Assembly: GCA_002269645.1 (NCBI GenBank)
Contig: NIVC01001028.1
Span: forward strand, 1 to 64,000
Reading direction: 5' to 3'
Origin: Macrostomum lignano
Lineage: Eukaryota
DNA length: 64,000 nucleotides
The stretch's first letter is position 1. The number at the start of each line of letters is the position of its first letter. The notes beneath the pieces are model-generated. The model worked only from the letters and a program-made list of their open reading frames with translations, was not told the DNA's origin and made no database searches. This document shows positions 4,189 through 45,172 of this stretch, piece by piece. A program made the translations under genes and the position numbers.

Positions 4189-5892
4189 TCAGTTTAGTTG
4201 TTTAGCGCGCCTCATGCAACTCGCACGCAGAATCACGTCGTGCAGCAGCTCAAACAGCTCCAGCACAGTCAGCAGAGAGCAGCCCAAATACAATCCGAGA
4301 GCGCTGCCGATGTCAGCGATAAACTGGGACAGATTGTAGTCAAGACTGAATGTTGTCAGAGAGCTCATTGTCGCATCCGCTCGAAGCGTGACGCTCACTG
4401 CGGCTCGCGAAAAATAACGCGACACTCCCTCCTCGAAACCAAGCCTGTCAGAAGCATCCATAAATTTCATAATCTTGACACCAGTTTCCAAAGACCTATA
4501 ATCCGTTGGATCCACAGTCGCTATCATAGATCCTAACAGGTTTTTCACTAGGCGAATCAGGCTGCCCTGGTTCGGCCACAATCCGTACGATGACGTCACA
4601 TCGTACAGCCGCTGATTGCACAGTCGCTTCTCTGAGCACGCTTTGTCCCACGAGCTGTTTGCGCTGTCAGCGTCTTCTCGAGCTCTCAGAAACGCATTCA
4701 TATTTCGGTGGATGGTGTCCATCGATGCCGCTGCAGTGAGGTTGAGACACAAGGCCAAGTGTCTGAACTCCCATGGTGTCGGGTCCGGTGAAGGACTGCA
4801 GTTGTACATCTGCTGTCTGCTCCTGGCGATCTCCGAGTAGTAGCAGTGGGCCTCGCTGTAGCTAAACGCGTCGGCAGAACCGGTGCGCGGGTTGAGGAAC
4901 AACACTGGCTCGTCGTGCTGTGAGACACACTTGCCAGGGAAGTCCGACGGCTTCATGAGAACATCTCGCATCGCGATCGAGATATCATAGGCTCTTCCAG
5001 GACCAAGGCTGACCACAGTCGACGTGAGTCGTGAAGGATACTGACCTCTGGGAGTAAGGTAGAGGTACATTCCGCTGCCTTTATCGAATCCGATTGGGTT
5101 CTCGAGGTCCCAGTCATACGGATATACATTTACTGACTTTCCTGAAACAATTGTAGTCATGTTCGGGAGGCGCTGATCAGGTGGTGAGAACAAACTTTTT
5201 TCGTCAAAGTCGCGAAAGTATGAATCCAAGTGTAAATTAAGCTTGAGTCTGCTGTTTGTGTTTTGCATTTTGAGCAACTCAGCGTCGGTCAAGGCCAGCT
5301 TAAAGCACTTCAGGTGGTTCGGGTGGTACAAGGTCTCGACCGCAATCGGCTTGTCGAGTGTTGGCTCAGAGCCTGCACTGAATATGCCGAAGTTCATGTA
5401 GAAAGTCTGCAGCTTCCGCTGACCGACGATGTCAGCGAGAACTTTGTACGGGAGCGACTGGATCAAGCTTGTTGGCCGAAGCTCGTCCAGTGCGACGGTA
5501 ATGTGGGCCGATGAGTTCAGGGAGTTGAGCGCATCTTGGAATGAGGCATTTGCAGCGTAGAATGGAGTTTTCACCTGGTCAGCTTCGGACTTGTTCAAGC
5601 GACACGTGAAGGATCCAGCTGTTTGCAGACTGTTGCAAAAGTACACGTCGGGAAACTCGAACGGAACCTTTTCGGCTTCGAACTCGGACTTGACGCCCGG
5701 ACTGTTGAGCTTCCCAATGTAGACGATGCAGGTGTTGAGTAGCAGGCCAAGAAAGGATAAAAAAGTGAGCAGCCAGAAAACCCGAAGAGCGACGGGTCGA
5801 CTCGCAGGAGCCACTCGGCCGATAGCGTGAGCGGTGGTGTTGGCCACGGAGTCCCGGACAATCTCTGACAGAGGCAGGCGCTGAGAAACCAT
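4189..5892 (-). CDS. DEG/ENaC (amiloride-sensitive/ASIC superfamily) channel subunit, intronless, copy A, 567 aa
   Basis: Pre-TM1 TTAHA, TM1 VFWLLTFLSFLGLLL, FPDVYFCN, Cys-rich thumb region, WP motif, TM2 IADIGSALGLYLGCSLLTVLELFE containing GxS filter. Confidence 0.93.
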   Translation of the reverse strand: MVSQRLPLSEIVRDSVANTTAHAIGRVAPASRPVALRVFWLLTFLSFLGLLLNTCIVYIGKLNSPGVKSEFEAEKVPFEFPDVYFCNSLQTAGSFTCRLNKSEADQVKTPFYAANASFQDALNSLNSSAHITVALDELRPTSLIQSLPYKVLADIVGQRKLQTFYMNFGIFSAGSEPTLDKPIAVETLYHPNHLKCFKLALTDAELLKMQNTNSRLKLNLHLDSYFRDFDEKSLFSPPDQRLPNMTTIVSGKSVNVYPYDWDLENPIGFDKGSGMYLYLTPRGQYPSRLTSTVVSLGPGRAYDISIAMRDVLMKPSDFPGKCVSQHDEPVLFLNPRTGSADAFSYSEAHCYYSEIARSRQQMYNCSPSPDPTPWEFRHLALCLNLTAAASMDTIHRNMNAFLRAREDADSANSSWDKACSEKRLCNQRLYDVTSSYGLWPNQGSLIRLVKNLLGSMIATVDPTDYRSLETGVKIMKFMDASDRLGFEEGVSRYFSRAAVSVTLRADATMSSLTTFSLDYNLSQFIADIGSALGLYLGCSLLTVLELFELLHDVILRASCMRRAKQLN

Positions 5893-6999
5893 GAGGACTC
5901 TACAGTAAGAATGTAACTTTAAAAGAAAGCTTTGTAACTAACCGCGTGCAATGTCTCTGTATTTGGACATAGAACAGATTATAATCCAAGTCGACAAATG
6001 ACAGATTTGTGGGGATCAATAAACTACCAGCGTCATGTTGCTCTCGATGCAATTAGCTAGCGATTCTCGGTTGAATGCTTTCTGAGAGAAACTTTTTCGA
6101 CAAAGAATCTTGTTTTAATGTGTTCCCGTGTGTTTGCATCCCATAGTGGTCGTTATTTGCATACAGTTATTTGCGTATCTGAGTGCTGCCAGTTTAATGA
6201 CTAGTTTGCTTGATTGTAGCAAACTGCAGCTCAATGTGTGTTAGCTATTAGAAACTATTTTTAATCTATACAGTTACACTATATCCCCCTCTACGTTGTA
6301 TCCTCTGAAAGTATGAAACTGCAACTTGTCGCTTCCTCAGTCATAATTGCCTGCCTTATGGGGATGTAATTTGTAAGCGTAAATAATGAAATCTCATTGG
6401 AGCAAAGCACAGGTGTATTGTGTGCAATACAAGGACCACTGGAATGTTCTAGTCTAGTAGTTCTTGGTGCAATAGAGTAGCATTTTTTCAACAGGGATGC
6501 AAAGCAACTCAAATGGTGCGCGTTAGCATTACTGCAGCACCTGAGGCTACTTGAAGAAGCAAAACTTTAGGCAAGCATGCAGATGTTCAGCTTGCCTCCA
6601 GTCACTGCGCCACACATGGCGTCTGGATCTTCAGCCTAGCGACTAGCGAGCAGCGCCCCCGTTGGGGGGGGGTGGCAACAAAATATGGAATAAAAATTTT
6701 TGAATGAACTAAATATATAGCTTCCAACTCCGACCAATACGACCAATTGTGCTCAGGTTCGCTCCCGAGTTTGTCTGCGCGAACTGTGACTTGGGCTGCT
6801 CACATTTCTCTACTGATGTCAGAATGTAGTAGCCGGAAAAGGTGACTGGATTGGCAATTGGTGACAATGGGTCTGAGTTACCAGTACGCGGACATATGCT
6901 TCACTGTTTTTAGTCCTTGGTTGATTAAGTGTTCGCGTGAAATCGCACAGATCTGGCACTTACATCAAGGAATTTGTGGCGTTTTGTGGTGCAAGAAAA

Positions 7000-10353: not shown

Positions 10354-12060
10354 TCATTTTAGCGTATTGTCCGCGCGCCTCAAGCAACTCGCACGCAGAA
10401 TCACGTCGTGCAGCAGCTCAAACAGCTCCAGCACAGTCAGCAGAGAGCAGCCCAAATACAATCCGAGAGCGCTGCCGATGTCAGCGATAAACTGGGACAG
10501 ATTGTAGTCAAGACTGAATGTTGTCAGAGAGCTCATTGTCGCATCCGCTCGAAGCGTGACGCTCACTGCGGCTCGCGAAAAATAACGCGATACTCCCTCC
10601 TCGAAACCAAGCCTGTCAGAAGCATCCATAAATTTCATAATCTTGACACCAGTTTCCAAAGACCTATAATCCGTTGGATCCACAGTCGCTATCAGAGATC
10701 CTAACAGGTTTTCCACTAGACGAATCAGGCTGCCCTGGTTCGGCCACAATCCGTACGATGACGTCACATCGTACAGCCGCTGATTGCACAGTCGCTTCTC
10801 TGAGCACGCTTTGTCCCATGAGCTGTTTGCGCTGTCAGCGTCTTCTCGAGCTCTCAGAAACGCATTCATATTTCGGTGGATGGTGTCCATCGATGCCGCT
10901 GCAGTGAGGTTGAGACACAAGGCCAAGTGTCTGAACTCCCATGGTGTCGGGTCCGGTGAAGGACTGCAGTTGTACATCTGCTGTCTGCTCCTGGCGATCT
11001 CCGAGTAGTAGCAGTGGGCCTCGCTGTAGCTAAACGCGTCGGCAGAACCGGTGCGCGGGTTGAGGAACAACACTGGCTCGTCGTGCTGTGAGACACACTT
11101 GCCAGGGAAGTCCGACGGCTTCATGAGAACATCTCGCATCGCGATCGAGATATCATAGGCTCTTCCAGGACCAAGGCTGACCACAGTCGACGTGAGTCGC
11201 GAAGGATACTGACCTCTGGGAGTAAGGTAGAGGTACATTCCGCTGCCTTTATCGAATCCGATTGGGTTCTCCAGGTCCCAGTCATACGGATATACATTTA
11301 CTGACTTTCCTGAAACAATTGTAGTCATGTTCGGGAGTCGCTGATCAGGTGGTGAGAACAAACTATTTTCGTCAAAGTCGCGAAAGTATGGATCCAAGTG
11401 TAAATTAAGCTTGAGTCTGCTGTTTGTGTTTTGCATTTTGAGCAACTCAGCGTCGGTCAAGGCCAGCTTAAAGCACTTCAGGTGATTCGGGTGGTACAAG
11501 GTCTCGACCGCAATCGGCTTGTCGAGTGTTGGCTCAGAGCCTGCACTGAATATGCCGAAGTTCATGTAGAAAGTCTGCAGCTTCCGCTGACCGACGATGT
11601 CAGCGAGAACTTTGTACGGGAGCGACTGGATCAAGCTTGTTGGCCGAAGCTCGTCCAGTGCGACGGTAATGTTGGCCGATGAGTTCAGGGAGTTGAGCGC
11701 ATCTTGGAATGAGGCATTTGCAGCGTAGAATGGAGTTTTCACCTGGTCAGCTTCGGACTTGTTCAAGCGACACGTGAAGGATCCAGCTGTTTGCAGACTG
11801 TTGCAAAAGTACACGTCGGGAAACTCGAACGGAACCTTTTCGGCTTCGAACTCGGACTTGACGCCCGGACTGTTGAGCTTCCCAATGTAGACGATGCAGG
11901 TGTTGAGTAGCAGGCCAAGAAAGGATAAAAAAGTGAGCAGCCAGAAAACCCGAAGAGCGACGGGTCGACTCGCAGGAGCCACTCGGCCGATAGCGTGAGC
12001 GGTGGTGTTAGCCACGGAGTCCCGGACAATCTCTGACAGAGGCTGTAGTTTTGAAACCAT
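10354..12060 (-). CDS. DEG/ENaC channel subunit, intronless, copy B, 568 aa
   Basis: Same motifs as copy A; 6 internal amino-acid differences plus divergent extreme termini. Confidence 0.93.
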   Translation of the reverse strand: MVSKLQPLSEIVRDSVANTTAHAIGRVAPASRPVALRVFWLLTFLSFLGLLLNTCIVYIGKLNSPGVKSEFEAEKVPFEFPDVYFCNSLQTAGSFTCRLNKSEADQVKTPFYAANASFQDALNSLNSSANITVALDELRPTSLIQSLPYKVLADIVGQRKLQTFYMNFGIFSAGSEPTLDKPIAVETLYHPNHLKCFKLALTDAELLKMQNTNSRLKLNLHLDPYFRDFDENSLFSPPDQRLPNMTTIVSGKSVNVYPYDWDLENPIGFDKGSGMYLYLTPRGQYPSRLTSTVVSLGPGRAYDISIAMRDVLMKPSDFPGKCVSQHDEPVLFLNPRTGSADAFSYSEAHCYYSEIARSRQQMYNCSPSPDPTPWEFRHLALCLNLTAAASMDTIHRNMNAFLRAREDADSANSSWDKACSEKRLCNQRLYDVTSSYGLWPNQGSLIRLVENLLGSLIATVDPTDYRSLETGVKIMKFMDASDRLGFEEGVSRYFSRAAVSVTLRADATMSSLTTFSLDYNLSQFIADIGSALGLYLGCSLLTVLELFELLHDVILRASCLRRADNTLK

Positions 12061-19976: not shown

Positions 19977-21730
19977 CGAGGGATGTTCCATAAGTACTTA
20001 TACTTTTGCATGCTGCTCAGGAACTACGCAACCAATCATTGTAAGTTTTATGTCGCTGGAAAGCGGCTTTACTCATCTTTAATCTGTCGCCAAAATCATT
20101 TCGTTCTGTCAACTATGTCAAAAGTTACAACAAAAAACGTAGTCAAAGGTCACCCATAGACTTACAAGAAATTTAAAGAGCAACAACTACAATGGCAAGC
20201 ATGAAAACAGAGGCGCGTTGTTGATGACAGAAAGTTTGACTTCTTTGTCACTCATCCTCAGTCGGTACCGACACCTTCTCAACGTAGTTTCCACCGGAGT
20301 TGATGCACTTGGTCCACCTGTTAAACATGCTTTTGATGGCTTCTGCGTACAGCTGTCGGGGGATGACATACAGCAGAATTCTGCGGACTTCCTCCTCGAT
20401 CTGGTTCCTGGTCTCGTACACGCGTCCTTTCAGATGGCGCTTCAACTCTGGAAATAAAGCAAAGTCTGCTGGTGCCAGGTCTGGAGAGTAAGGAGGGTGA
20501 GGTAGAAGATGGAGCTTCAGCTTGCTGATTGCCTCGACTGTCTTTTGTGCTGTATGAGGCCTTGCATTGTCATGATGAAGAATGAAAGGTCTGGGATTTT
20601 CACGACGCTTGTTCTGGATGTCATGATGCAGCTTTGTTAGCGTTTCAACGTAGCGCTCAGAGTTTATTGTAGTGTTTGGCTCCAAAAACTCGACAGTTAG
20701 AGGACCATTGCAGTCGAAAAACAGAGACAGCATGATCTTCTTTCCATGTGCGTCCCTTTGAGCTTTTACCGGAGGATCAGAGCCCTTCAGCATCCAGACC
20801 TGGGAATCACGTTTCGTTGGTGGATCAAAATGGGGAATCCAGGTTTCATCTCCAGTGACTATCATTCGATGGAAGAGATCCCAACCACCGTATTCTTCCA
20901 TCATCCGAATATTGGCCTGACAAATCTGCTGCCTCTGCAGTCTCAAGTCCGAGGTGAGTAGGCGTGGCACCCAACGAGCAGTCAGCTTGACAAAGTCCAT
21001 GCGCGACAAGCAGCGATGCACAGTTGTGCTCGGCGTGTCCAGTCTATCTGCAATCTGTCGAATCGTTAGCCGACAATCTTCGTCCAGCAGATCAAGAATT
21101 CGATCGGTGAGAGCATCAGAGCCTGATGTGCAGGGGCGGCCCGACCTCGGCAAATCAGCAACATTGGTCCTTCCTGCTTCGAACTGCTCAACCCAGTTGT
21201 AGACGGTCATCCTGCTCACCGCATTAGCTCCATGAATGTTGCATAAATCCGCATAAATCTCTGATCGCTTTTTTCCGAGTTTCCAGAGGGTAAAAATTGC
21301 AGCGCGCTGTCCTTCCCTTGAGTTCACATCCATGGTGATGCAGCAGCAGCCAAGGTGGTGAAACTTTACAAGATTAAGATGCTGTGATCTTAAGATTAAG
21401 ATGCTGTGAAAGCTTAGGCCAGTATTTTCCATAGACGAAAAGGGTGTGGCATTCGCTTATGAAGCAAAAAAGAATGCATTATGTAGAATCCGAAATAACT
21501 CTGCGTGCTGAACTTTGAAGTTTTGATTTTGAAAATTTCTTGTAAGTCTATGGGTGACCTTTGACTACGTTTTTTGTTGTAACTTTTGACATAGTTGACA
21601 GAACGAAATGATTTTGGCGACAGATTAAAGATGAGTAAAGCCGCTTTCCAGCGACATAAAACTTACAATGATTGGTTGCGTAGTTCCTGAGCAGCATGCA
21701 AAAGTATAAGTACTTATGGAACATCCCTCG
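19977..21730 (-). mobile_element. Full-length mariner transposon, 1754 bp, 198-bp TIRs, TA target duplication
   Basis: TIRs 19977-20174 and 21533-21730 start CGAGGGATGTTCC and show no mismatch that I could find; TA on both sides; lies in SCAF8 intron 1. Confidence 0.97.
20248..21333 (-). CDS. Mariner DD34D transposase, 361 aa from MDVNSREGQR
   Basis: HTH N-terminus, WVPRLL, IVTGDETW, HHDNARPH, YSPDLAPADF with 34 residues between second and third Asp; no stop or frameshift. Confidence 0.95.
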   Translation of the reverse strand: MDVNSREGQRAAIFTLWKLGKKRSEIYADLCNIHGANAVSRMTVYNWVEQFEAGRTNVADLPRSGRPCTSGSDALTDRILDLLDEDCRLTIRQIADRLDTPSTTVHRCLSRMDFVKLTARWVPRLLTSDLRLQRQQICQANIRMMEEYGGWDLFHRMIVTGDETWIPHFDPPTKRDSQVWMLKGSDPPVKAQRDAHGKKIMLSLFFDCNGPLTVEFLEPNTTINSERYVETLTKLHHDIQNKRRENPRPFILHHDNARPHTAQKTVEAISKLKLHLLPHPPYSPDLAPADFALFPELKRHLKGRVYETRNQIEEEVRRILLYVIPRQLYAEAIKSMFNRWTKCINSGGNYVEKVSVPTEDE

Positions 21731-29281: not shown

Positions 29282-30477
29282 ATTAAATTTGTGTGTTTTT
29301 TCGGATGGCTGTTGGGCCTGGTCGGGTAAGAACAAATCAAGGTCAAACCCGATCGGCTGAAGAAAGCGGGAAAAGTTACTATTTTTTTAAATTCGTGTCT
29401 GTGTGAAAATAGCTAGATTGAGCGTATACAATATGATGCGGTTTATGACTTAATTAGTTATTGTGTTTTTGTGTCCCATTTTTCTTATCGCTATCACAAT
29501 TAGTGCCGCATGGACTCGCCTGTACATGTGCATTGTTTATCTATTCTGTTGTCTGTTTAACTATTAAATATTTTATTTGGTCTGCGCCACTAATACTAGA
29601 AAAACTAAGATGTGCCAGTCAGCACATTTGCGTGTAAGCTACTTTCAGTTCAGTAGTATTTTAGTAGTAGTATTTTAATGTATTTTTAAAGCCAAGGCTC
29701 ATTTATTGTCTCTTACCCCCCCCCCCGCCTAAACCCTCCAACCGCGCCTTCCACAATACTTCCCGCCCTGCCCCAAATTTTATTGCCTTTCTCGGAATTC
29801 CAGCCTAAAGCGGCCATGTACATTCAGTGGACTGGCTAATGAACATTATTGCTGAACCAATTAGCAAGCTGTTTACGCCTGCAAGCTTGGGCTTGTAAAC
29901 TTATCAAAGTCATTTCAGCTGCCCTTATTTTTATAAAATAGCTTATATATTCTTCTTTGCTACTGAACTGAAAGTAGAAAGCAGTTTTACTAAGTATATA
30001 TGCCTGAGCTCATCTAGTTAATTTTAGTATCTGTGGGCTGCGCTAGCATTTGTTCCCAACTCATGTAGTGTAGCTCTACCAATAGTACCCTGTAATTTCC
30101 TCCTTGTAATTGCTGTACAGTAAGTCCCTTTCGCAGTTGGTAAAAACCAGCTAAACATCAGCAAATCGGCTCGGTTGGTTTGTTAGGTTTACCATCTCTG
30201 TGGCTTCTATAATACTAAAATACTTGAAATTTTATTTTCAAATACAACCGGAAAGACAGTTTGTAACCCTGGCAGCCAAAATTTACCTAACTAATTAATG
30301 CTGTACTGGTAATTCCTATTGAATAATAAAATTTCAAAATGGCTAAATTATTGAATTTTATTATTTTTTGCGATTCGGTTAGCAACTAGATACTCTGGAT
30401 TTAACTCATTAGTCAGATTGAAGGCTTTCAAATGAATTGGTTACATGCACTCTGCTCGTTTGCGGGTGCTAGGGGTA

Positions 30478-31797
30478 GGCCCTCTGTAGCTGGTGCCCCC
30501 TTCTGTAACTGGCGCCCCTCTGTAGCTGGCGCCCCCTTCTGTAACTGGCGCCCCTCTGTAGCTGGCGCCCCCTTCTGTAACTGGCGCCCCTCTGTAGCTG
30601 GTGCCCCCTTCTGTAACTGGCGCCCCTCTGTAGCTGGTGCCCCCTTCTGTAACTGGCGCCCCTCTGTAGCTGGTGCCCCCTTCTGTAACTGGCGCCCTCT
30701 GTAGCTGGTGCCCCCTTCTGTAACTGGCGCCCCTCTGTAGCTGGTGCCCCCTTCTGTAGCTGGTGCCCCCTTCTGTAGCTGGTGCCCCCTTCTGTAGCTG
30801 GTGCCCCCTTCTGTAGCTGGTGCCCCCTTCTGTAGCTGGTGCCCCCTTCTGTAGCTGGTGCCCCCTGTAGCTGGTGCCCCCTTCTGTAGCTGGTGCCCCC
30901 TGTAGCTGGTGCCCCCTTCTGTAACTGGCGCCCTCTGTAGCTGGTGCCCCCTTCTGTAACTGGCGCCCCTCTGTAGCTGGTGCCCCCTTCTGTAACTGGC
31001 GCCCTCTGTAGCTGGTGCCCCCTTCTGTAACTGGCGCCCCTCTGTAGCTGGTGCCCCCTTCTGTAGCTGGTGCCCCCTTCTGTAGCTGGTGCCCCCTTCT
31101 GTAGCTGGTGCCCCCTTCTGTAGCTGGTGCCCCCTTCTGTAGCTGGTGCCCCCTTCTGTAGCTGGTGCCCCCTTCTGTAGCTGGTGCCCCCTTCTGTAGC
31201 TGGTGCCCCCTTCTGTAGCTGGTGCCCCCTGTAGCTGGTGCCCCCTTCTGTAGCTGGCGCCCCCTTCTGTAACTGGCGCCCTCTGTAGCTGGCGCCCCCT
31301 TCTGTAACTGGCGCCCCTCTGTAGCTGGCGCCCCTCTGTAGCTGGTGCCCCCTTCTGTAACTGGCGCCCCTCTGTAGCTGGTGCCCCCTTCTGTAACTGG
31401 CGCCCCTCTGTGGCTGGTGCCCCTTCTGTAACTGGCGCCCCTCTGTAGCTGGTGCCCCCTTCTGTAACTGGCGCCCCTCTGTAGCTGGCGCCCTCCAGTG
31501 TAGCTGGCGCCCCCCTCTGTAGCTGGCGCCCTCCAGTGTAGCTGGCGCCCTCTGTAGCTGGTGCCCTCTGTAGCTGGTGCCCTCTGTAGCTGGTGCCCCC
31601 TTCTGTAGCTGGTGCCCCCTTCTGTAACTGGCGCCATCTGTAGCTGGCGCTCTCCAGTGTAGCTGGCGCCACCCTCTGTAGCTGGCGCCCTCCAGTGTAG
31701 CTGGCGCCCTCCAGTGTAGCTGGCGCCCTCCTCTGTAGCTGGTGCCCCCTTCTGTAACTGGTGCCCCTCTCTGTCGCTGGCGCTCCTCTGTAGCTGG
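30478..31797. repeat. C-rich minisatellite of 17/19-bp units with a 36-bp higher-order repeat
   Basis: TGTAGCTGGTGCCCCCTTC and TGTAACTGGCGCCCCTC alternate, then occur in runs. Confidence 0.95.
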
Positions 31798-32776
31798 CAA
31801 TGTATGACACTGCAAGTGAGCCTAAATTTCTCACTTCCGTGTCCTTATGGTGTTAGGAGTTTTAAGAGCAAGATCCCCGGATAAAACTCAACCATATTGC
31901 AGAGCGGATCGATCTTCCTACTGGCTGCTTGTTTGCTGGTGTTGGAAACTACTGGTTGGACTTGGCATTTTCTTACTTATAGAAACCTTATATAATTCTA
32001 TTGTTTGGGTTTTGTTAGTAGCCATATAGTTTTTAAATATATGTCCAGAACACCCATGTGCTATCTCAGGAATTAGAATAGTATAGTGCTTAAGTCAGCT
32101 ATAAATTCACTTCGTTGGTTACGAGTCAATAACAGCTATGAATTCAGAAAGGTCAGCTAAACGTACGAGCGTATTCTGCACTGAAAATATATAATATGTT
32201 TATTATACGAGTGAGTTGGAGCTGTTTTATGGTTTGCCAAATCGATCATCAGTGGGCGTGTATACAATTGCTAGAAAAATATATACACAATATATAGTAT
32301 ATGCTATGATTTGAATTCATTTATTCCATTGTGTACCAATGACTTACATCTATAGTAAATTGCATCACCCACAGTTGAACTGCGGTGTCACTTTGGGGCC
32401 GAGATCAATTGAGAAGAGTTGACCAGTGGATTCGAAGTGGAAACTAACGTTGTCTGAGTATTGCATCCTATTGCAGGCCCTGCAACGAGTGCAGAGAAAT
32501 TCGAAAGTCGAACCGAGACAATGATTTGCACTTAATTATCCGTGGATTTTATGTGGCAGAAAAATAGATTTTATAAACCATTGTTCCCTTTTGTCTATGG
32601 TTTCCGGCATTCATACTTGCGGTAACAATTTAATTGTTTATCGGCTTTTTTCGATTGTTGCCGGATTTCAGACGAATGTATTTGGCTATCAAAACAAGGA
32701 ACAACAATAGCAACACGGCGAAAGTGTTTCATAGTCACAAAAAGTTCTTAAGAACAAACCGATCGAATCAATTGTT

Positions 32777-38658: not shown

Positions 38659-39014
38659 TCTTTTATTAGAGACAGGGGCTGTGTGCACCCTGGCGCACTT
38701 TAAGTGACATTGTCACACAAATTTTTTCAAGTCATGCGACAAAATTGAAATTACATTTATTTCTATGAAATTGAATTTTTGCTGCATCTCTAGCTTTTCT
38801 ATCTAGCGTCGATGACGAATCTGAAATTACCAACTAGAGGCCCTGAATGAAATAATAGTTAAATGGTTTAAAAAAATAACTTAGTATTCGATAATATGGT
38901 TTTCCGTGTACATGTAATTATAATATTGGTAGCAGCTAATTATTGCATTGTATTTGACTCAATCGACAGCGCCAGTGGTTGATATCGATAACACAAGTCG
39001 CGTTCGTTCAAAGG

Positions 39015-42000
39015 ATGCAAGGCGCCCAGCTTCTCGTTTTCGCGCTGGCACTCAGCGCCTGCCCGATGGCAAATGCCGAAGGCTTGGGCACCAAAGTGGC
39101 CAAAAAAGCGTGGGACATTGTTCAAAACAAGCTGAACCCAAAGAGCAAGGCCGAGATGTACCAGAAAGCTGTGGACATTGTGTCGGACCACATCACCAAG
39201 TCTGCCAACAAAGCTGAGAAGCTAGCTAGTAGCTACATGTCGGCTGTGGACAAAGACCCCGGTGCTCTCATCACCAGGGAGAGCATGAAGAAGATCATAA
39301 GTGGCAGCTCATTCCTGCCGCAGAAGGCCGGCACAAGAACGGTGTCTCTGCAGTCGGATCAAGGATTCAACGGTTTCACCAACTACCAGCCATCGGGTTG
39401 GAAGATCACCGAAACAATGAGTGGTCCTACAGATAAGAAAGAGGAGCCTTCAGAGACCAAGGAGCCCGTTTACACTTACCCGATGGGCCTCGGCCCCGTT
39501 CTGCTCAACCAGTGCACGGAGAAGAACTACGACAAGACCAGCCCGTGCTACAACAGCAAGTTGTTCGACCTGCAAATCACGATCTGCTTGAATCAGATCG
39601 ACGCAGCCAACTATATCGGGGTGGGCTTCAACGGCAGAGGCTACTACAATGCGCAGAGTAGAAGAGCCAGCCTGGTTCAAAGAAGCTGCTCAAACCGAGC
39701 AACCTTCATGGGATCCGACATTCCCGACACTATGAACATATTCGGCATTTTTGAAACATTCGCCGAGACTAAGTCGTTCCAGTCAGCCGATGAGTATATG
39801 CAATACATCAGACATAAGGCTGGATTGTCCAACCAAAAGAACTTGTTCGCGAGCGAGGCCAGCAAATACGGCAAGGCCAGCGGAATCGGCTTTGATCTTG
39901 GAGGCGTTGGCGCTGCAGCGGGAGCTTTGATCGGCGCCAAGGCCGGCGGTCCAGCGGGAGCCGAAATGGGCGCGGGTCTGGGCGGGGCTATTGGTGGCAC
40001 CATCAATGGAGGCAGCGGATCTGGGTCAGGAAACGCAAAGCAGAGCGAACGGAGCAACAGTTCGTCTGCAACCAGTCACTTCGAAGCTTCAGACAAATTT
40101 CAAAAGGCCTCGAATAATTTCTTCGCGATTATGTATGTCAACGTTATTCTGTACGAGATCAGCTTGGATGAGGTGAAGCCAACAGATCTCAGTCTAGCCC
40201 TGCTTAAGGATTACATGAGCCTGCCAGTGTCCTATTTCTCCATCGGTGCTGACGTCAAGTACCAGAACTTCCTGCTGCGTTGGGGCACGCACTTCATCCG
40301 TTCAGGAAAGTTCGGAGGCCAACTGAAGATTACGAAGAGAGCGAGATCGGATAAGGTTCAGTCAGCTCAGCAGTTTGCCAGCATTGCAGAGACCGAGTTT
40401 CAATCCATGTTTGCCACTCTGCAGTCAAAATACTCGCAGAAGGAGAGCGGAATTGCTATATTCTTCATCAACACGAAGAGCAAGGAGGTTACGCAGAACA
40501 GCCAAGCCAAGGCAGGGTCTGAATACTCGAGCTCTATGAGGCAGACACAGAGCCAATCGCGTCAATTTCAGCAATCTGAGTTTACCCAGACAACCGTGGA
40601 GGCTCAAGGTGGAACTCCCGAGATTGCAGAAGCTCTCGTTGACTTTTACACCCCTGCGTTCAAGCAGATTTACCACGATTGGCTGGCGTCCATTAAGGAC
40701 TACGCTAAGCCGTTCGAGTTCCAGTTGAAAGCCATTGACGTGCTGTTTAACATGAACATGAACGACCTGTTTCCGGCTGGCAACATTGACTTCGGCTGCG
40801 TCAAGGATGGAGGCGGCAAAGCAAATATTCTCATCGAGCCCAAGACGAAACTTCGCTACTATATAGATGTTCAAACTCAGTTTTCCAACTCTACTAAGAT
40901 TGAGGTAAAGAAAAAGGTCTATTGCAAGTACTCTAAGCTGGACGACTTCAAGACAGATCTCGACAGGCGCAGAATCTCTTTGGAGAGGGCCATCGGGGTG
41001 TACATGGCAGAGGGGCCGTTTCCAACATCGACTTTCGAACTCAAAGGCGGTGAGCCAGGGTGCGAAGAGGCCACGCTTGGAGCACTGAGAGCGGCCAATA
41101 AGGGCAAGTCGGCTGTGCTCAAGTTCTCGGAGATGAAAAAGTACCCATTTCTTGTTACATTCGATTTACCAGAGGCAATCCCGGGCCTCATTCCGAAGCA
41201 GTCAAAGTTCAGACTCATCTACAGATCAGGCATGTGGTTTGCGACTGAGCCCACACAAACGACCATGCATCTGTACGATGGCTGCGAGATTCCAGAGTCC
41301 AAAGAGGCAAAGATCTGCTTCAGGAATATTATCATGACTTACAATGAAGCGTCTGGATTTCTGCGCGTTGATGCGAAAGATTTCCGTGCGACGAAAGCCA
41401 GGATACCAGCTTTGCCAATCTGGCTGGCAAATTCCGTTGTTGCCAGGGTGCAAAAGCTTGAAATTTCTGCAACCGCTAAGAACGATATGTATGGCGGCCG
41501 GGGTGCGGTTCCCTGCAACATCAAGTGGGTGAACTCGCATCGTCTTGACCCGCAGAAGGAAGAAAACTGCATTCACTTCACTGCCGCCACCTCAGGTGAC
41601 ATATTCGTCATACTTTCAGCCATTCCAAGGGACCATTCTACCTGGTACTACCTGCAGATCAATCCCGAAGGTGTTTCGTTTTACCAGGCGATGGAATTAA
41701 AACGAAGGGACACTCAGAAAGGAATGGGAATCCTTGGCGATAGCAACCTCTTTCAATCATTCTTCGTCTGTGTCGTGCAGAAGAAGGACAGAGTAACGAT
41801 GCAGTACGGAAAGGCAGATCCCGTGAGCGAGGTCGGCACCGTGTATTCGGGTTATACATTTGCACCCGACAGCCAATTCAGCCGTTTGTCATTTTATACA
41901 TTCGGGTCCGGTCGCAAGCCTGTGTCATTAATGGACATCCGTCTAACCCGAATGTTGCCCCAGGTGAAATGTTTGAGCAAAAACTACATCAATGTAGACG

Positions 42001-43533
42001 GGCACTGCGTTCTCGCGTGCCATTCGGAGTGCGATCAGTGCGATGTAGCCAGAGACAACAAGTCGTGCCGCCGGTGCAAGCACGTGCGAGTGGAGACTGG
42101 CAGCGGAAAGTTGAAAGTGACGGAGTGTTTCGCAAAATGTCCGCCTGGAACCACCTTGAAATCGTCTAAGACTGCGACTAAGAAGACTAAGGCTAAGCCG
42201 ACTGGTCTGTGCGAGAAGTGTCCGGCAGGAACCTTCAAGAGTGGCGACGGAAACCAAAAATGCAGTCCGTGTCCCAAAGGAAAAATAAGCGACGCTGGAG
42301 CCAAAAGCTGCGTAGCCTGTGAAGCCGGAACCTTCAACGACAAGCTTGGCCAGTCGAAATGCCAGCGCTGCGCACTCGGAACCTATTCAAGCGACGGTGC
42401 GGTGAGCTGCACAAAATGCCCTGTCGGGCACTATTCCGATAGTTTAGGCCAATCATCCTGCTTGCCATGCTCTTTTGGCAGCTTTGGGAAAGTCACTGGC
42501 CTGGCAAAGTGCACCCCCTGTTCGAAAGGATATTTCGCAGACAAAAAAGGTCAAACAATTTGCTCAAAGTGTCCGGCCGGGACGTCCAGTGCCAAGGGCT
42601 CGATGACTTGCAATAACAGTTGCACGAAAGGCAAATTTAGCCCTCGAAAGGGTGAGCCGTGCAGGCCGTGTCCTCCAGGCACGTACGGCGACAGTGTGGG
42701 CTCTTCCGCTTGTTCGAAGTGCAAAAAAGGCACCTACCAGTCAAATTCGGGTCGAACTTCGTGCATTTCAGCACCGATTGGTCACTTCGTGTCGAAGGAG
42801 GGGGCCACTAAACCGTCTAAATGCGCAGCAGGATCATTTACCGCTAAAACAGGAAGCATAAAATGCCGCCCGTGCTCTCCTGGAAGCTATGCGTCATCCA
42901 CCGGCTCGACCGCTTGTAAAAAATGCTCGCGCGGCTACTTCCAGCCTTCGACAGGCCAATCGAGTTGCAAAAAAGCGAGATACCATCATTATGTTAATCA
43001 GGAAGGAGCGGTGAAGGACACGCCTTGCTCTGCCGGGTACACGGCTGCTTCCGACCGCAGATCTTGCCACAAGTGCCGTCCAGGTACCTATGGCTCGGGA
43101 ACAGGTCTTGGTTGCACAGGTTGCTCATGGGGTTCCTACTCAGGAAAATATGGAAGTTTGAGCTGCACCCCATGCCCAAAAGGCTATTATCAACCTAATC
43201 ATTATGCAACTTCATGCATTCCCGCTCGGCGAGGCTATTACATCAACCGTGTGGAATCAACATCTCCTGGCTCCCAATGCGCCCCTGGCTACTATTCTGA
43301 TAAGCCGGGTCAGGCTTACTGCAAGCCTTGCCCTGCTGGACAAAGGAGTGAGAAAACACGCGGATCGACCTCGTGCCGGTATTGCGGACCTGGTACTTAT
43401 TCATCTAAGTCTGGCAGCACCCAGTGCAAAAAATGTCCATCGTCTGATTATGTCACTAATGCGGCCCGCTCTGCGTGTCACAAGTGTCCAGCCGGTTCTA
43501 TCGCGCTGAGCCAGGACAGGAGAAAGTGTTTTA
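39015..43533 (+). CDS. Secreted MACPF multidomain protein exon 1; model join(39015-43533,43631-43900,44904-45172), 1685 aa
   Basis: Signal peptide MQGAQLLVFALALSACPMANA; MACPF signature WGTHF-IRSGKF-GG at 40281-40319, IGVGFN, VEAQGG, WLASIKDYAKPFEFQL; FAMeT-like domain ~41510-41910; furin-like repeat ~42005-42150; ~26 CxxCxxGxY/F units; donor A|GTGAGC. Confidence 0.9.
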
Positions 43534-43630
43534 GTGAGCTTTTTTACTTCATTCTGATTCGAAGTTAGTCAAGGCCCTATAAAGTTCAATATACTTATTA
43601 TTCTAAATATATAAATACCAAAACTTTCAG

Positions 43631-43900
43631 AGTTCGGCGAGTGCTACTATCCTGGTAAAGACTTTGTTAGCACAAAGGTAAACCGTGCTTATGCTGGGCC
43701 GTGCCAGTCTTGGAGCGTGAAGAGCTGCTCCAAATACACCGAAGGAGTAAGTTGTCATACGCCAAACAAAAGGGTGCGTGAGGCTCAAGCAACGGGCAAC
43801 ACGTGTCGAATTATCGCCAAAGAAGGCGAAAAGAAGCCATGGTGTTACACAAAAACAGCTACGAAATGGTCTCACTGCTCGATTCCTAGATGCGGAAAAA
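43631..43900 (+). CDS. MACPF protein exon 2: kringle 1
   Basis: TTTCAG| phase 1; ECYYPG..GPCQSW..CH..NTCRII..KPWCYT..WSHCSIPRC; donor A|GTGAGT. Confidence 0.88.
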
Positions 43901-44252
43901 GTGAGTTGCTTGAATATTGATTACTCTGCAGGCTAATTATAGAGGAAAAACAACAGCAAGGCGTGTTCCGCAATGTTCTATTATGCGTGACTAATAAAAA
44001 CCCACTGTCTGGATTTTTATGATGTTAAGGTTTGTAGTTTAGAATTGATTCAATTTTAATATTTAGCAATGATGATTGAAATTTATTGCACTAAACGGAA
44101 CCTATGCCGAAATTGTGTGAGAATTAAGTGCTTTGGGAAGCTCGCACCTTGTTTGTTGTTTGAAAAAGTAAAAACTATATGAGCCTAAATGGTAGCACAA
44201 CAATTGCCCGAGACACCATTTTCTGCAATGCGTAGGGAATGAGCGTAAGACT

Positions 44253-44838
44253 CTATGATGAACTCTGTGGTAAACTCTATGGTAAACTCTATGGTAAACT
44301 CTATGGTAAACTCTATGGTAAACTCTATGGTAAACTCTATGATGGTAAACTCTATGGTAAACTCTATGGTAAACTCTATGGTAAACTCTATGGTAAACTC
44401 TATGGTAAACTCTATGGTAAACTCTATGATGGTAAACTCTATGGTAAACTCTATGGTAAACTCTATGGTAAACTCTATGGTAAACTCTATGGTAAACTCT
44501 ATGGTAAACTCTATGGTAAACTCTATGGTAAACTCTATGGTAAACTCTATGGTAAACTGTATGTTAAACTGTATGGTGAACTCTATGGTAAACTCTTTGG
44601 TAAACTGTATGGTGAACTCTATGGTAAACTCTTTGGTAAACTGTATGGTGAACTCTATGGTAAACTCTTTGGTAAACTGTAAGGCGAACTCTATGATGAA
44701 CTCTTATGGTAAACTCTTATGGTAAACAATGGTAAACTCTATGGTAAAATGTATGGTAAACTCTATGGTAAACCTTATGGTAAACTGTATTGTAAACTGT
44801 ACGGTAAACTCTATGGTAAATTATGGAAAACTCTATGC
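44253..44838. repeat. 12-bp minisatellite in MACPF gene intron 2
   Basis: Unit ATGGTAAACTCT, degenerating toward the acceptor. Confidence 0.95.
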
Positions 44839-44903
44839 TAGATTCGTTCTCATAAGTGTTTTTGCAAACTACCACCGTGGATTCATGCGCTATAATATTA
44901 CAG

Positions 44904-45172
44904 AACTGAAGGAGTGCTACAGACTTGGCAGCACAGATTACGTCTCGGGCATCAGCGTGACGGAGAGTGGCAAGACCTGTCAGTCATGGGAGATTCGCAC
45001 CTGCCCATCTGGCACCAGCGGCAAAACCTGCCACGAGCCTAGCAGCGCAGTGAAGCGTGCTAAAAAGATTGGCAACACCTGTCGGATTGTTCCCGGCGAT
45101 TCAGCCAAAAAGCCGTGGTGTTATACTACTACGAGTAAGAAGTGGGAGTATTGCAAAATTCCGCAATGCTGA
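44904..45172 (+). CDS. MACPF protein exon 3: kringle 2 and stop
   Basis: TTACAG| phase 1; ECYRLG..DY..TESGKTCQSW..CH..NTCRI..KPWCYTT..WEYCKIPQC*. Confidence 0.9.

Follow-up and report, generated by a model that had tools for sequence, protein, structure and literature searches.

What does a run of regularly spaced glycines do in a membrane hairpin of a MACPF protein? The question is raised by a gene in a 64,000-nucleotide stretch of contig NIVC01001028.1 of Macrostomum lignano, a free-living flatworm; this whole stretch is referred to below as the window. The gene codes for a MACPF protein in which 34 residues of the first transmembrane hairpin region (TMH1) carry glycine at every fourth position, in the manner of a glycine zipper. 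In the canonical MACPF mechanism, TMH1 and TMH2 unfold and enter the membrane as amphipathic β-hairpins (PMC4742998). The original prediction, made from the sequence alone, had placed a helical glycine-zipper hairpin at the tip of TMH1. We find that the segment is best read as an insertion of about 34 residues, specific to one clade and under selection, at the TMH1 tip of a secreted, multi-domain metazoan MACPF protein.

The MACPF domain and its TMH1 segment

The encoded protein is a MACPF protein by profile, signature and fold. The Pfam MACPF family (PF01823) matches it with 58.8 bits, against a gathering cut-off of 21.5; the match spans only amino acids (aa) 361–593 of the open reading frame (ORF), C-terminal to the zipper. 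The signature (Y/W)-G-(T/S)-H-(F/Y)-x6-G-G is present as WGTHFIRSGKFGG, and in our alignment (A1) its residues G, T and H and its closing F-G-G do not vary. An AlphaFold2 model of ORF residues 160–700, built on a 29-sequence alignment, has a mean predicted local distance difference test score (pLDDT) of 65.7, with values of 80–92 in the core. It shows the bent central β-sheet with the two inter-strand clusters TMH1 and TMH2, and the sheet strands that bound these clusters have a pLDDT of 82–91. Foldseek comparison with the PDB gave 56 matches at E ≤ 0.001, and 50 of 50 among the matches listed have the MACPF fold; they include GNIP1Aa (6fbm, 1.7e-13), Mpf2Ba1 (8b6v), Plu-MACPF (2qp2), perforin (3nsj), TgPLP1, MPEG1, the complement proteins C6, C8 and C9, and also astrotactins. 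A sequence search of the PDB found no chain similar to this MACPF protein.

Translation of window positions 39900–40001 (+) gives exactly the 34 residues that had been quoted, GGVGAAAGALIGAKAGGPAGAEMGAGLGGAIGGT, which are residues 308–341 of the 1529-aa ORF 38979–43568 (+). The strand boundaries of the AlphaFold2 model yield lengths of 111 aa for TMH1 and 77 aa for TMH2, close to the estimates of about 113 and 78 made earlier, and set the segment in the middle of TMH1, in agreement with its proposed position. TMH1 consists of a polar descending arm of 40 aa, the zipper of 34 aa and a polar ascending arm of 37 aa. The two hydrophobic tips that had been noticed about 35 residues into each region were also found, SGIGFDL from aa 301 (33 residues into TMH1) and SGIAIFF from aa 490 (32 residues into TMH2); tips of the type GF(S)FLGLG occupy the TMH2-tip position in homologs. 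Mean Kyte–Doolittle (KD) hydropathy is −0.69 and −1.12 in the TMH1 arms, −0.89 in TMH2 and +0.75 in the zipper. The hydrophobic parts of the two regions are thus the zipper and the seven to eight residues of the TMH2 tip GIAIFFI only, and the zipper is the sole long one.

A glycine zipper (GxxxGxxxG, in the sense of PMC10240207) is taken here as at least three Gly in one four-residue register within a hydrophobic stretch. The window copy has eight such in-register Gly, and up to 12 are found in a homolog (P0060). Within the segment they lie at positions 4, 8, 12 and 16 and at 20, 24, 28 and 32, mirror-symmetric around Pro18; the central turn residue is Pro in six of the eight tabulated sequences and Ala in the other two. 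Only 194 of 200 000 shuffles of the 34 residues, and 511 of 200 000 shuffles of the surrounding 62 residues, place eight Gly in one four-residue register. Four residue classes were tabulated in eight sequences (56 positions per class; P0157, which clusters with P0021, was left out). Position i is Gly in 50/56 cases (mean volume 67, mean KD −0.13). Position i+1 is Ala or Gly in 44/56 (91, 0.42), with polar Q, K, D or N in the distal arm. Position i+2 is variable (117, 0.96), and I, L, V or M occupies position i+3 in 42/56 (143, 3.23). The sharp difference between i+1 and i+3 makes the period four and not two. Across homologs the mean hydropathy of the zipper is 0.40–1.29, and the best 19-aa window reaches 1.38, below the classical value of 1.6.

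The status of the segment was assessed from the lengths of TMH1 and TMH2 in related proteins. An exhaustive HMMER search, which was needed to reach the zipper-bearing relatives, gave 263 proteins at E ≤ 0.001; word-indexed protein searches gave 5 and 14 matches, even with the low-complexity TMH regions masked. For proteins with both regions, lengths were estimated from sequence anchors calibrated on the AlphaFold2 model. The TMH1/TMH2 values are 39/41 aa in a group of six proteins with short regions (including the named coral protein P0005), 72/73 in P0032, 76/73 in P0019, 77/78 in P0031, 78/73 in the amphioxus type, 78–79/77 in the closest relatives without the zipper (P0015 and P0162), 83/82 in Owenia and 83/85 in P0040. 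The exceptions are P0017 (67/73) and P0163, P0013 and P0022, whose anomalously short TMH1 estimates may reflect defective gene models or anchor failures. These aside, the two lengths match within about five residues over a two-fold range. An excess of TMH1 over TMH2 is seen in the zipper-bearing proteins only: the window protein, P0001, P0006 and P0008 (4/4) all have 111/77 aa. The excess is 34 residues, the length of the zipper, and corresponds to the surplus of about 35 that had been ascribed to it. Because only zipper-bearing proteins break the length rule, and by exactly this number, the segment is, as judged from sequence lengths, a true insertion relative to that rule. Matched lengths would be expected if both regions pair as hairpins in one barrel, and the rule, which holds from 39 to 85 residues, is an indirect sign that this phylum-spanning animal MACPF family builds paired-hairpin barrels. 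Co-variation from about 39/41 to 83/85 would imply barrels of very different heights across animal groups.

Homologs do carry the insert. It aligns without gaps in nine sequences (the window copy, L001, P0006, P0008, P0018, P0021, P0157, P0060 and P0080), and identity to the window TMH1 query among the zipper homologs is 33–54%. Eight columns, seven Gly and one Ala, are invariant in eight to nine sequences. L001, a second M. lignano paralog (NIVC01004190.1), lies upstream of P0002, a truncated gene model. When the window copy is compared with L001, synonymous sites are saturated (proportion of synonymous differences, pS, 0.76–0.78), and the proportion of non-synonymous differences (pN) is 0.239 in the zipper versus 0.230 in the folded MACPF core; of 12 Gly codons conserved between them, 9 carry a synonymous difference. 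This pattern indicates purifying selection on the zipper.

A Gly/Ala-rich low-complexity tract that expanded neutrally, without a specific function, could be imagined, since the surrounding TMH1 is Gly/Ser-rich and variable in length across the family, and zipper-free members of the clade exist, at least one of which (P0015) has only a 13-residue remnant. It would not account for the gap-free alignment and invariant columns at such low identity, for a pN equal to that of the folded core at saturated synonymous sites, or for an arrangement that is rare in shuffles. Arrangement, conservation, pattern and selection together refute non-conserved low-complexity sequence, an outcome that the original prediction had named as fatal to it, and neutral expansion is largely refuted and scarcely credible. 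A retained intron or an antisense gene was likewise rejected: the segment is in frame, its protein sequence is conserved while its codons show synonymous changes, and the antisense ORF that overlaps it (39677–40057 (−), 126 aa, Pro/Ala-rich) is the complement of the Gly/Ala codons, not a gene.

In a neighbour-joining tree of 177 core columns, all zipper-bearing sequences fall in one clade with 98% bootstrap. This clade also contains three proteins without the zipper, P0015, P0034 and P0162, which adjoin P0008 and P0021 with 100% support; a GxxxG remnant is kept in at least P0015. As the tree stands, the insert may either have been gained once and then shortened in one lineage, or have been gained twice. 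Beyond M. lignano, zipper-bearing sequences come from a Logan run (SRR30276812) and from marine metagenome assemblies, including a TARA sample. The named relatives, from amphioxus, the annelid Owenia, the coral Oculina and the chiton Liolophura, are all without the insert.

Two further observations concern individual members of the family. The L001 frame (L001:4909–6003) has a single in-frame TAA at L001:5935–5937, in the ascending arm of TMH1, and runs on to the ATG at 6001, the start of P0002. The TAA could mark a pseudogene, be a polymorphism or result from faulty assembly; the pieces on either side of it were analysed separately, and intact copies exist in the window gene and P0006. The 405-aa protein P0010, labelled 'Kangiellaceae bacterium' at NCBI (a metagenome-assembled genome; contig of 1250 nt), is 52–57% identical to the flatworm MACPF protein (window ORF aa about 440–760) and is most likely encoded by an animal contig mis-binned into a bacterial genome.

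Conformation and possible role of the zipper

The period-4 residue classes favour a helix: a strand would put positions i+1 and i+3 on one face, yet the former are small or polar and the latter large and hydrophobic. The Pfam Gly-zipper models PF13488, PF13441, PF05433 and PF13436, which describe two-helix membrane hairpins, align near full length (for example, over model positions 3–38 of 46) with the window segment; of seven homolog segments scanned, four align in this manner too. A helix is also what AlphaFold2 places on ORF residues 309–342 when given TMH1 alone. A straight helix of 34 residues would be excluded in the pore state, because an insert at the tip of a β-hairpin must begin and end at adjacent strands. 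The Gly pairs around Pro18 (16/20, 12/24, 8/28 and 4/32) would set Gly opposite Gly at each level of an antiparallel helical pair. Closure into a hairpin we infer from topology only. K14 and E22 are also placed symmetrically, and E22 is seen only with K14 (in the window copy and P0021/P0157); the association is weak (hypergeometric p about 0.11, eight sequences), and the pairing was set aside as evidence for a hairpin and kept as a hint only.

Our preferred reading, to which we give a probability of about one half, is that the zipper acts as a helical module, weakly hydrophobic and able to pack on itself, which is brought to the target membrane by the TMH1 hairpin. The protein would oligomerize on this membrane, and TMH1 and TMH2 would unfurl into the paired β-hairpins of a barrel. 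The barrel wall would be made of the matched arms, with about 37–40 residues per strand, a wall into which the zipper could not fit. Its two ends would join adjacent antiparallel strands, and hence it would have to fold back on itself. It would do so as two antiparallel helices of about 16 residues each, packed by their Gly/Ala faces, an arrangement that fits the period-4 pattern and the symmetry of the Gly about the GG-P turn. Such a hairpin would probably not be hydrophobic enough to stop in the translocon of the endoplasmic reticulum, so that the protein would be secreted; the barrel would then carry the hairpin into the target bilayer, where it could anchor the oligomer and pack against the zippers of neighbouring subunits. 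Anchoring and oligomer packing had been raised as possibilities in the original prediction, beside a changed pore architecture and a tall barrel.

Several observations weigh against this reading. The AlphaFold2 model of the domain leaves the zipper unstructured (pLDDT about 25), and a model of TMH1 alone gives a straight, continuous single helix on ORF residues 309–342 (pLDDT 53–56), with no hairpin; of the predicted GxxxG hairpin resembling Gly-zipper 2TM motifs, the conserved GxxxG register therefore stands and the hairpin shape does not appear in either model. The search with Pfam Gly-zipper models that had been proposed as a check gave matches below every gathering cut-off, 15.0–15.1 bits for the window segment against 24.2–28.9, and 23.0 against 28.9 for the best homolog. 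The Gly register stays in phase across the GGP 'turn', whose Pro is replaced by Ala in two homologs. Fourier analysis of hydropathy does not separate α from β, with a family average of 0.68 at 90 degrees versus 0.73 at 180 degrees, because a period-4 comb has power at both angles. The window copy alone is strongest at 180 degrees (hydropathy moment 1.21), with G, K, E, P and T at even positions and A, V, I, L and M at odd ones. Pore formation by this MACPF family has indirect evidence only, in the co-variation of TMH lengths. Finally, the zipper is dispensable in some contexts, since three members of its clade are without it.

The even/odd split of the window copy and its large 180-degree moment are what would be expected if the zipper stayed part of the TMH1 β-hairpin and made it an unusually long one, rich in Gly, that crosses the membrane and closes with a three-residue G-P-A loop. 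Gly and K/E would then face the lumen and A, V, I, L and M the lipid, and TMH1 would project about 16 residues per strand past TMH2. The TMHs of characterized MACPF and cholesterol-dependent cytolysin (CDC) proteins insert in this way, as amphipathic β-hairpins (PMC4742998), K14 and E22 would be direct cross-strand partners, and short Gly-rich hydrophobic tips occur at the same site in relatives without the zipper. A strand would, however, turn both i+1 and i+3 to the lipid, and these differ in mean volume (91 versus 143) and hydropathy (0.42 versus 3.23) over the eight sequences. TMH1 and TMH2 are otherwise matched within about five residues, and a lower barrel of two of the four strands per subunit would probably be hard to close. 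We regard a β extension of this kind as possible, if rather doubtful.

A further reading, which we think unlikely, is a pore of hybrid make. Here the matched arms would build a β-barrel, tall and polar, that ends at the membrane surface, held there by the short aromatic TMH2 tip, and the bilayer would be crossed by a ring of zipper helical hairpins, one per subunit. On simple geometric grounds such a ring could extend the wall of the barrel, since a pair of helices at about 10 Å would span roughly the arc of four strands at about 4.8–5 Å. If true, this would be a MACPF protein with an α-helical membrane-spanning part; to our knowledge, all characterized MACPF/CDC pore formers cross the membrane by amphipathic β-hairpins alone.

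The absence of a packed zipper structure from the AlphaFold2 monomer would also suit a role in the soluble state, in which the zipper is a flexible or self-associating latch on the release of TMH1 or on the timing of oligomerization, before insertion and not as a membrane element. Glycine zippers generally mediate protein–protein packing, and TMH1 of complement C9 is reported to act as a brake on self-assembly (PMC6093860). A latch would leave unexplained the strict period-4 alternation of hydrophobic and small residues in both arms, and the zipper is the sole extended hydrophobic part of very polar TMH arms, at the tip that first reaches the membrane. We hold this explanation, too, to be unlikely.

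The polarity of the TMH arms throughout, together with a TMH2 tip of only seven to eight residues, is atypical of a membrane-spanning hairpin, and the large C-terminal adhesion-type domains (Ephrin_rec_like and kringle) also fit a non-lytic role. The protein might then be a MACPF that does not form pores, as proposed for astrotactins, with the zipper tethering it, for example, to a membrane of the producing cell or to a matrix. The signature motif and the fold are intact, though, and the zipper does not reach the hydropathy usual for stop-transfer. The close agreement between TMH1 and TMH2 lengths over a two-fold range, which a paired-hairpin barrel demands, is hard to explain otherwise. We consider a non-pore role very unlikely.

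A conserved, selected zipper module at the tip of one hairpin would give this superfamily a structurally new way to engage membranes, whether as an anchor, an inter-subunit clamp or a helical membrane-spanning ring. The zipper-free relatives of the same clade, with their matched TMH lengths, offer natural controls.

The gene and other features of the window

The features of the gene are listed in table 1. The ATG at 39015 is likely to be the start codon; the program-made ORF begins at the TTG at 38979, and its 3′ end probably enters an intron. The UniRef entry A0A1I8J970, a Macrostomum lignano 'MACPF domain-containing protein', is 100% identical across the 748-aa N-terminal query. The putative signal peptide overlaps the top 19-aa hydrophobic window of the protein (mean KD 1.56), and a KD hydropathy scan of the ORF found no transmembrane candidate besides it. 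Secretion is predicted because a signal peptide is present and no segment is of stop-transfer grade.

Table 1. Features of the MACPF gene, in window coordinates.
Feature	Position	Strand	ORF residues	Basis
Main coding exon of the MACPF gene	39015..43568	+		ORF list; A0A1I8J970 identity; tblastn of gene model onto window
Putative signal peptide MQGAQLLVFALALSACPMANA	39015..39077	+		Sequence reading; cleavage site inferred
MACPF domain (central bent β-sheet, TMH1 and TMH2)	39492..40757	+		Pfam PF01823; AlphaFold2; Foldseek
TMH1 region, 111 aa	39780..40112	+	268–378	Between AlphaFold2 strands E93-108 and E220-237
Glycine-zipper segment GGVGAAAGALIGAKAGG-P-AGAEMGAGLGGAIGGT	39900..40001	+	308–341	Translation; alignment; four-class pattern; shuffle; selection; sub-threshold Pfam
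Zipper arm 1, motif G-[A/G]-x-[I/V/A], with segment K14	39900..39950	+	308–324	Column table
Central Pro, in invariant GG-P/A turn	39951..39953	+	325	Alignment
Zipper arm 2, motif G-A-x-[M/L/I/V], with segment E22	39954..40001	+	326–341	Column table
MACPF signature motif WGTHFIRSGKFGG	40281..40319	+	435–447	Sequence reading; alignment A1
TMH2 region, 77 aa	40350..40580	+	458–534	Between AlphaFold2 strands E279-298 and E376-384; TMH lengths
Short hydrophobic TMH2 tip SGIAIFFI	40446..40469	+	490–497	Sequence; hydropathy
Cys-rich Ephrin_rec_like / tumour necrosis factor receptor-like repeats	42096..43568 (start approximate)	+		Pfam PF07699, 1.7e-49, 13 stretches
Downstream kringle-coding exons, same annotated gene model	43630-43893 and 44912-45169 (span 43630..45169)	+		tblastn of P0001, which carries Pfam PF00051

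The public gene model P0001 omits most of the in-frame Ephrin_rec_like repeats of the continuous ORF (window 42471–43568, +) and joins the kringle exons; either it removes repeat units by splicing or it is incomplete. After the MACPF domain, a region of about 340 aa (ORF aa about 700–1040, window about 41080–42100, +) is conserved from corals to amphioxus, with the motifs PCN.KWSN and FTAAS.GDIFVVF..IP....TWY. Pfam gives no match for it at E ≤ 0.1, and it looks like an unnamed domain of this MACPF family.

The uneven base composition of the window and its other genes agree with an animal genome. Elsewhere in the window, two intronless ORFs lie at 4189–5892 (−), with 567 aa, and at 10354–12060 (−), with 568 aa. 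Both match the amiloride-sensitive sodium channel family (ASC/DEG-ENaC) at full length and almost identically, with 109.7 and 109.6 bits; spaced about 6.2 kb apart, the pair looks like a recent tandem duplication. A 394-aa ORF at 20248–21432 (−) has mariner/Tc1-type transposase domains (Transposase_1, DDE_3 and HTH_48) and an AT-rich flank, with a GC content of 0.27–0.29 at 16–20 kb. The first 2000 nt (1–2000) are a compositional outlier, with a GC content of 0.65 and overlapping ORFs at the left end. Positions 30001–32000, a second such outlier, have an AT skew of −0.36, and three overlapping long ORFs at 30.4–31.8 kb suggest a repeat.

Comparison with known systems

With the MACPF/perforin superfamily (PF01823) the window protein shares an above-threshold Pfam match, the W-G-T-H-F-x6-G-G signature and a bent sheet with TMH1 and TMH2 in the expected places. 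It differs from the solved MACPF proteins in having no sequence match in the PDB, polar TMH arms with short hydrophobic tips, and the 34-residue Gly-zipper insert in TMH1. In the literature searched, no paper pairs MACPF with 'glycine zipper' or 'GxxxG', nor did we find an insert of this kind described for any MACPF protein. MPEG1 (perforin-2), of which 13 copies are reported in M. lignano (PMC10781884), is likewise a metazoan MACPF, present in several copies in this species and similar in fold. Membership in MPEG1, which we take to require sequence similarity and, at the C-terminal side of the MACPF and P2 domains, a membrane anchor, was rejected: the protein has no sequence match to the solved MPEG1 chains and no membrane anchor in the ORF, and ends in Ephrin_rec_like and kringle domains.

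The insert-free metazoan relatives (the amphioxus LOC144903369 type, Owenia fusiformis, Oculina patagonica and Liolophura sinensis) have the N-terminal region, the MACPF core and the post-MACPF region in common with the window protein, at 32–40% identity. In all of them, as in the window protein, the TMH1 tip carries a hydrophobic patch rich in Gly. They differ in that TMH1 and TMH2 are about equal (39/41 to 83/85, versus 111/77) and in lacking a long in-register GxxxG run.

The Pfam glycine-zipper families (PF13488, Gly-zipper_Omp; PF13441, Gly-zipper_YMGG; PF05433, glycine zipper 2TM; PF13436, Gly-zipper_OmpA) show the same layout of two Gly/Ala-striped hydrophobic stretches with a GG turn. 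The matches, however, reach 12–23 bits against cut-offs of 24–29, the host is a eukaryote, and the zipper, rather than being a small membrane domain by itself, lies inside a MACPF hairpin. The resemblance may come from convergent composition and not from shared descent, and we describe the segment as zipper-like in its probable working principle without filing it as a member of these families.

A precedent for the membrane step of the preferred reading is offered by bacterial zipper effectors, namely Tde1 of the type VI secretion system, TelE and EsxX of the type VII system, and the Caulobacter proteins CdzC and CdzD (PMC10240207, PMC10434224, PMC12744356, PMC5380434), in all of which a secreted protein with continuous GxxxG repeats attacks the membrane of another cell. 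For Tde1, these motifs are reported to be required for membrane permeabilization (PMC10240207). In the bacterial toxins the zipper is a terminal region of an α-type toxin, whereas here it is grafted onto a hairpin of the kind that forms β-barrels, and the likeness implies no homology.

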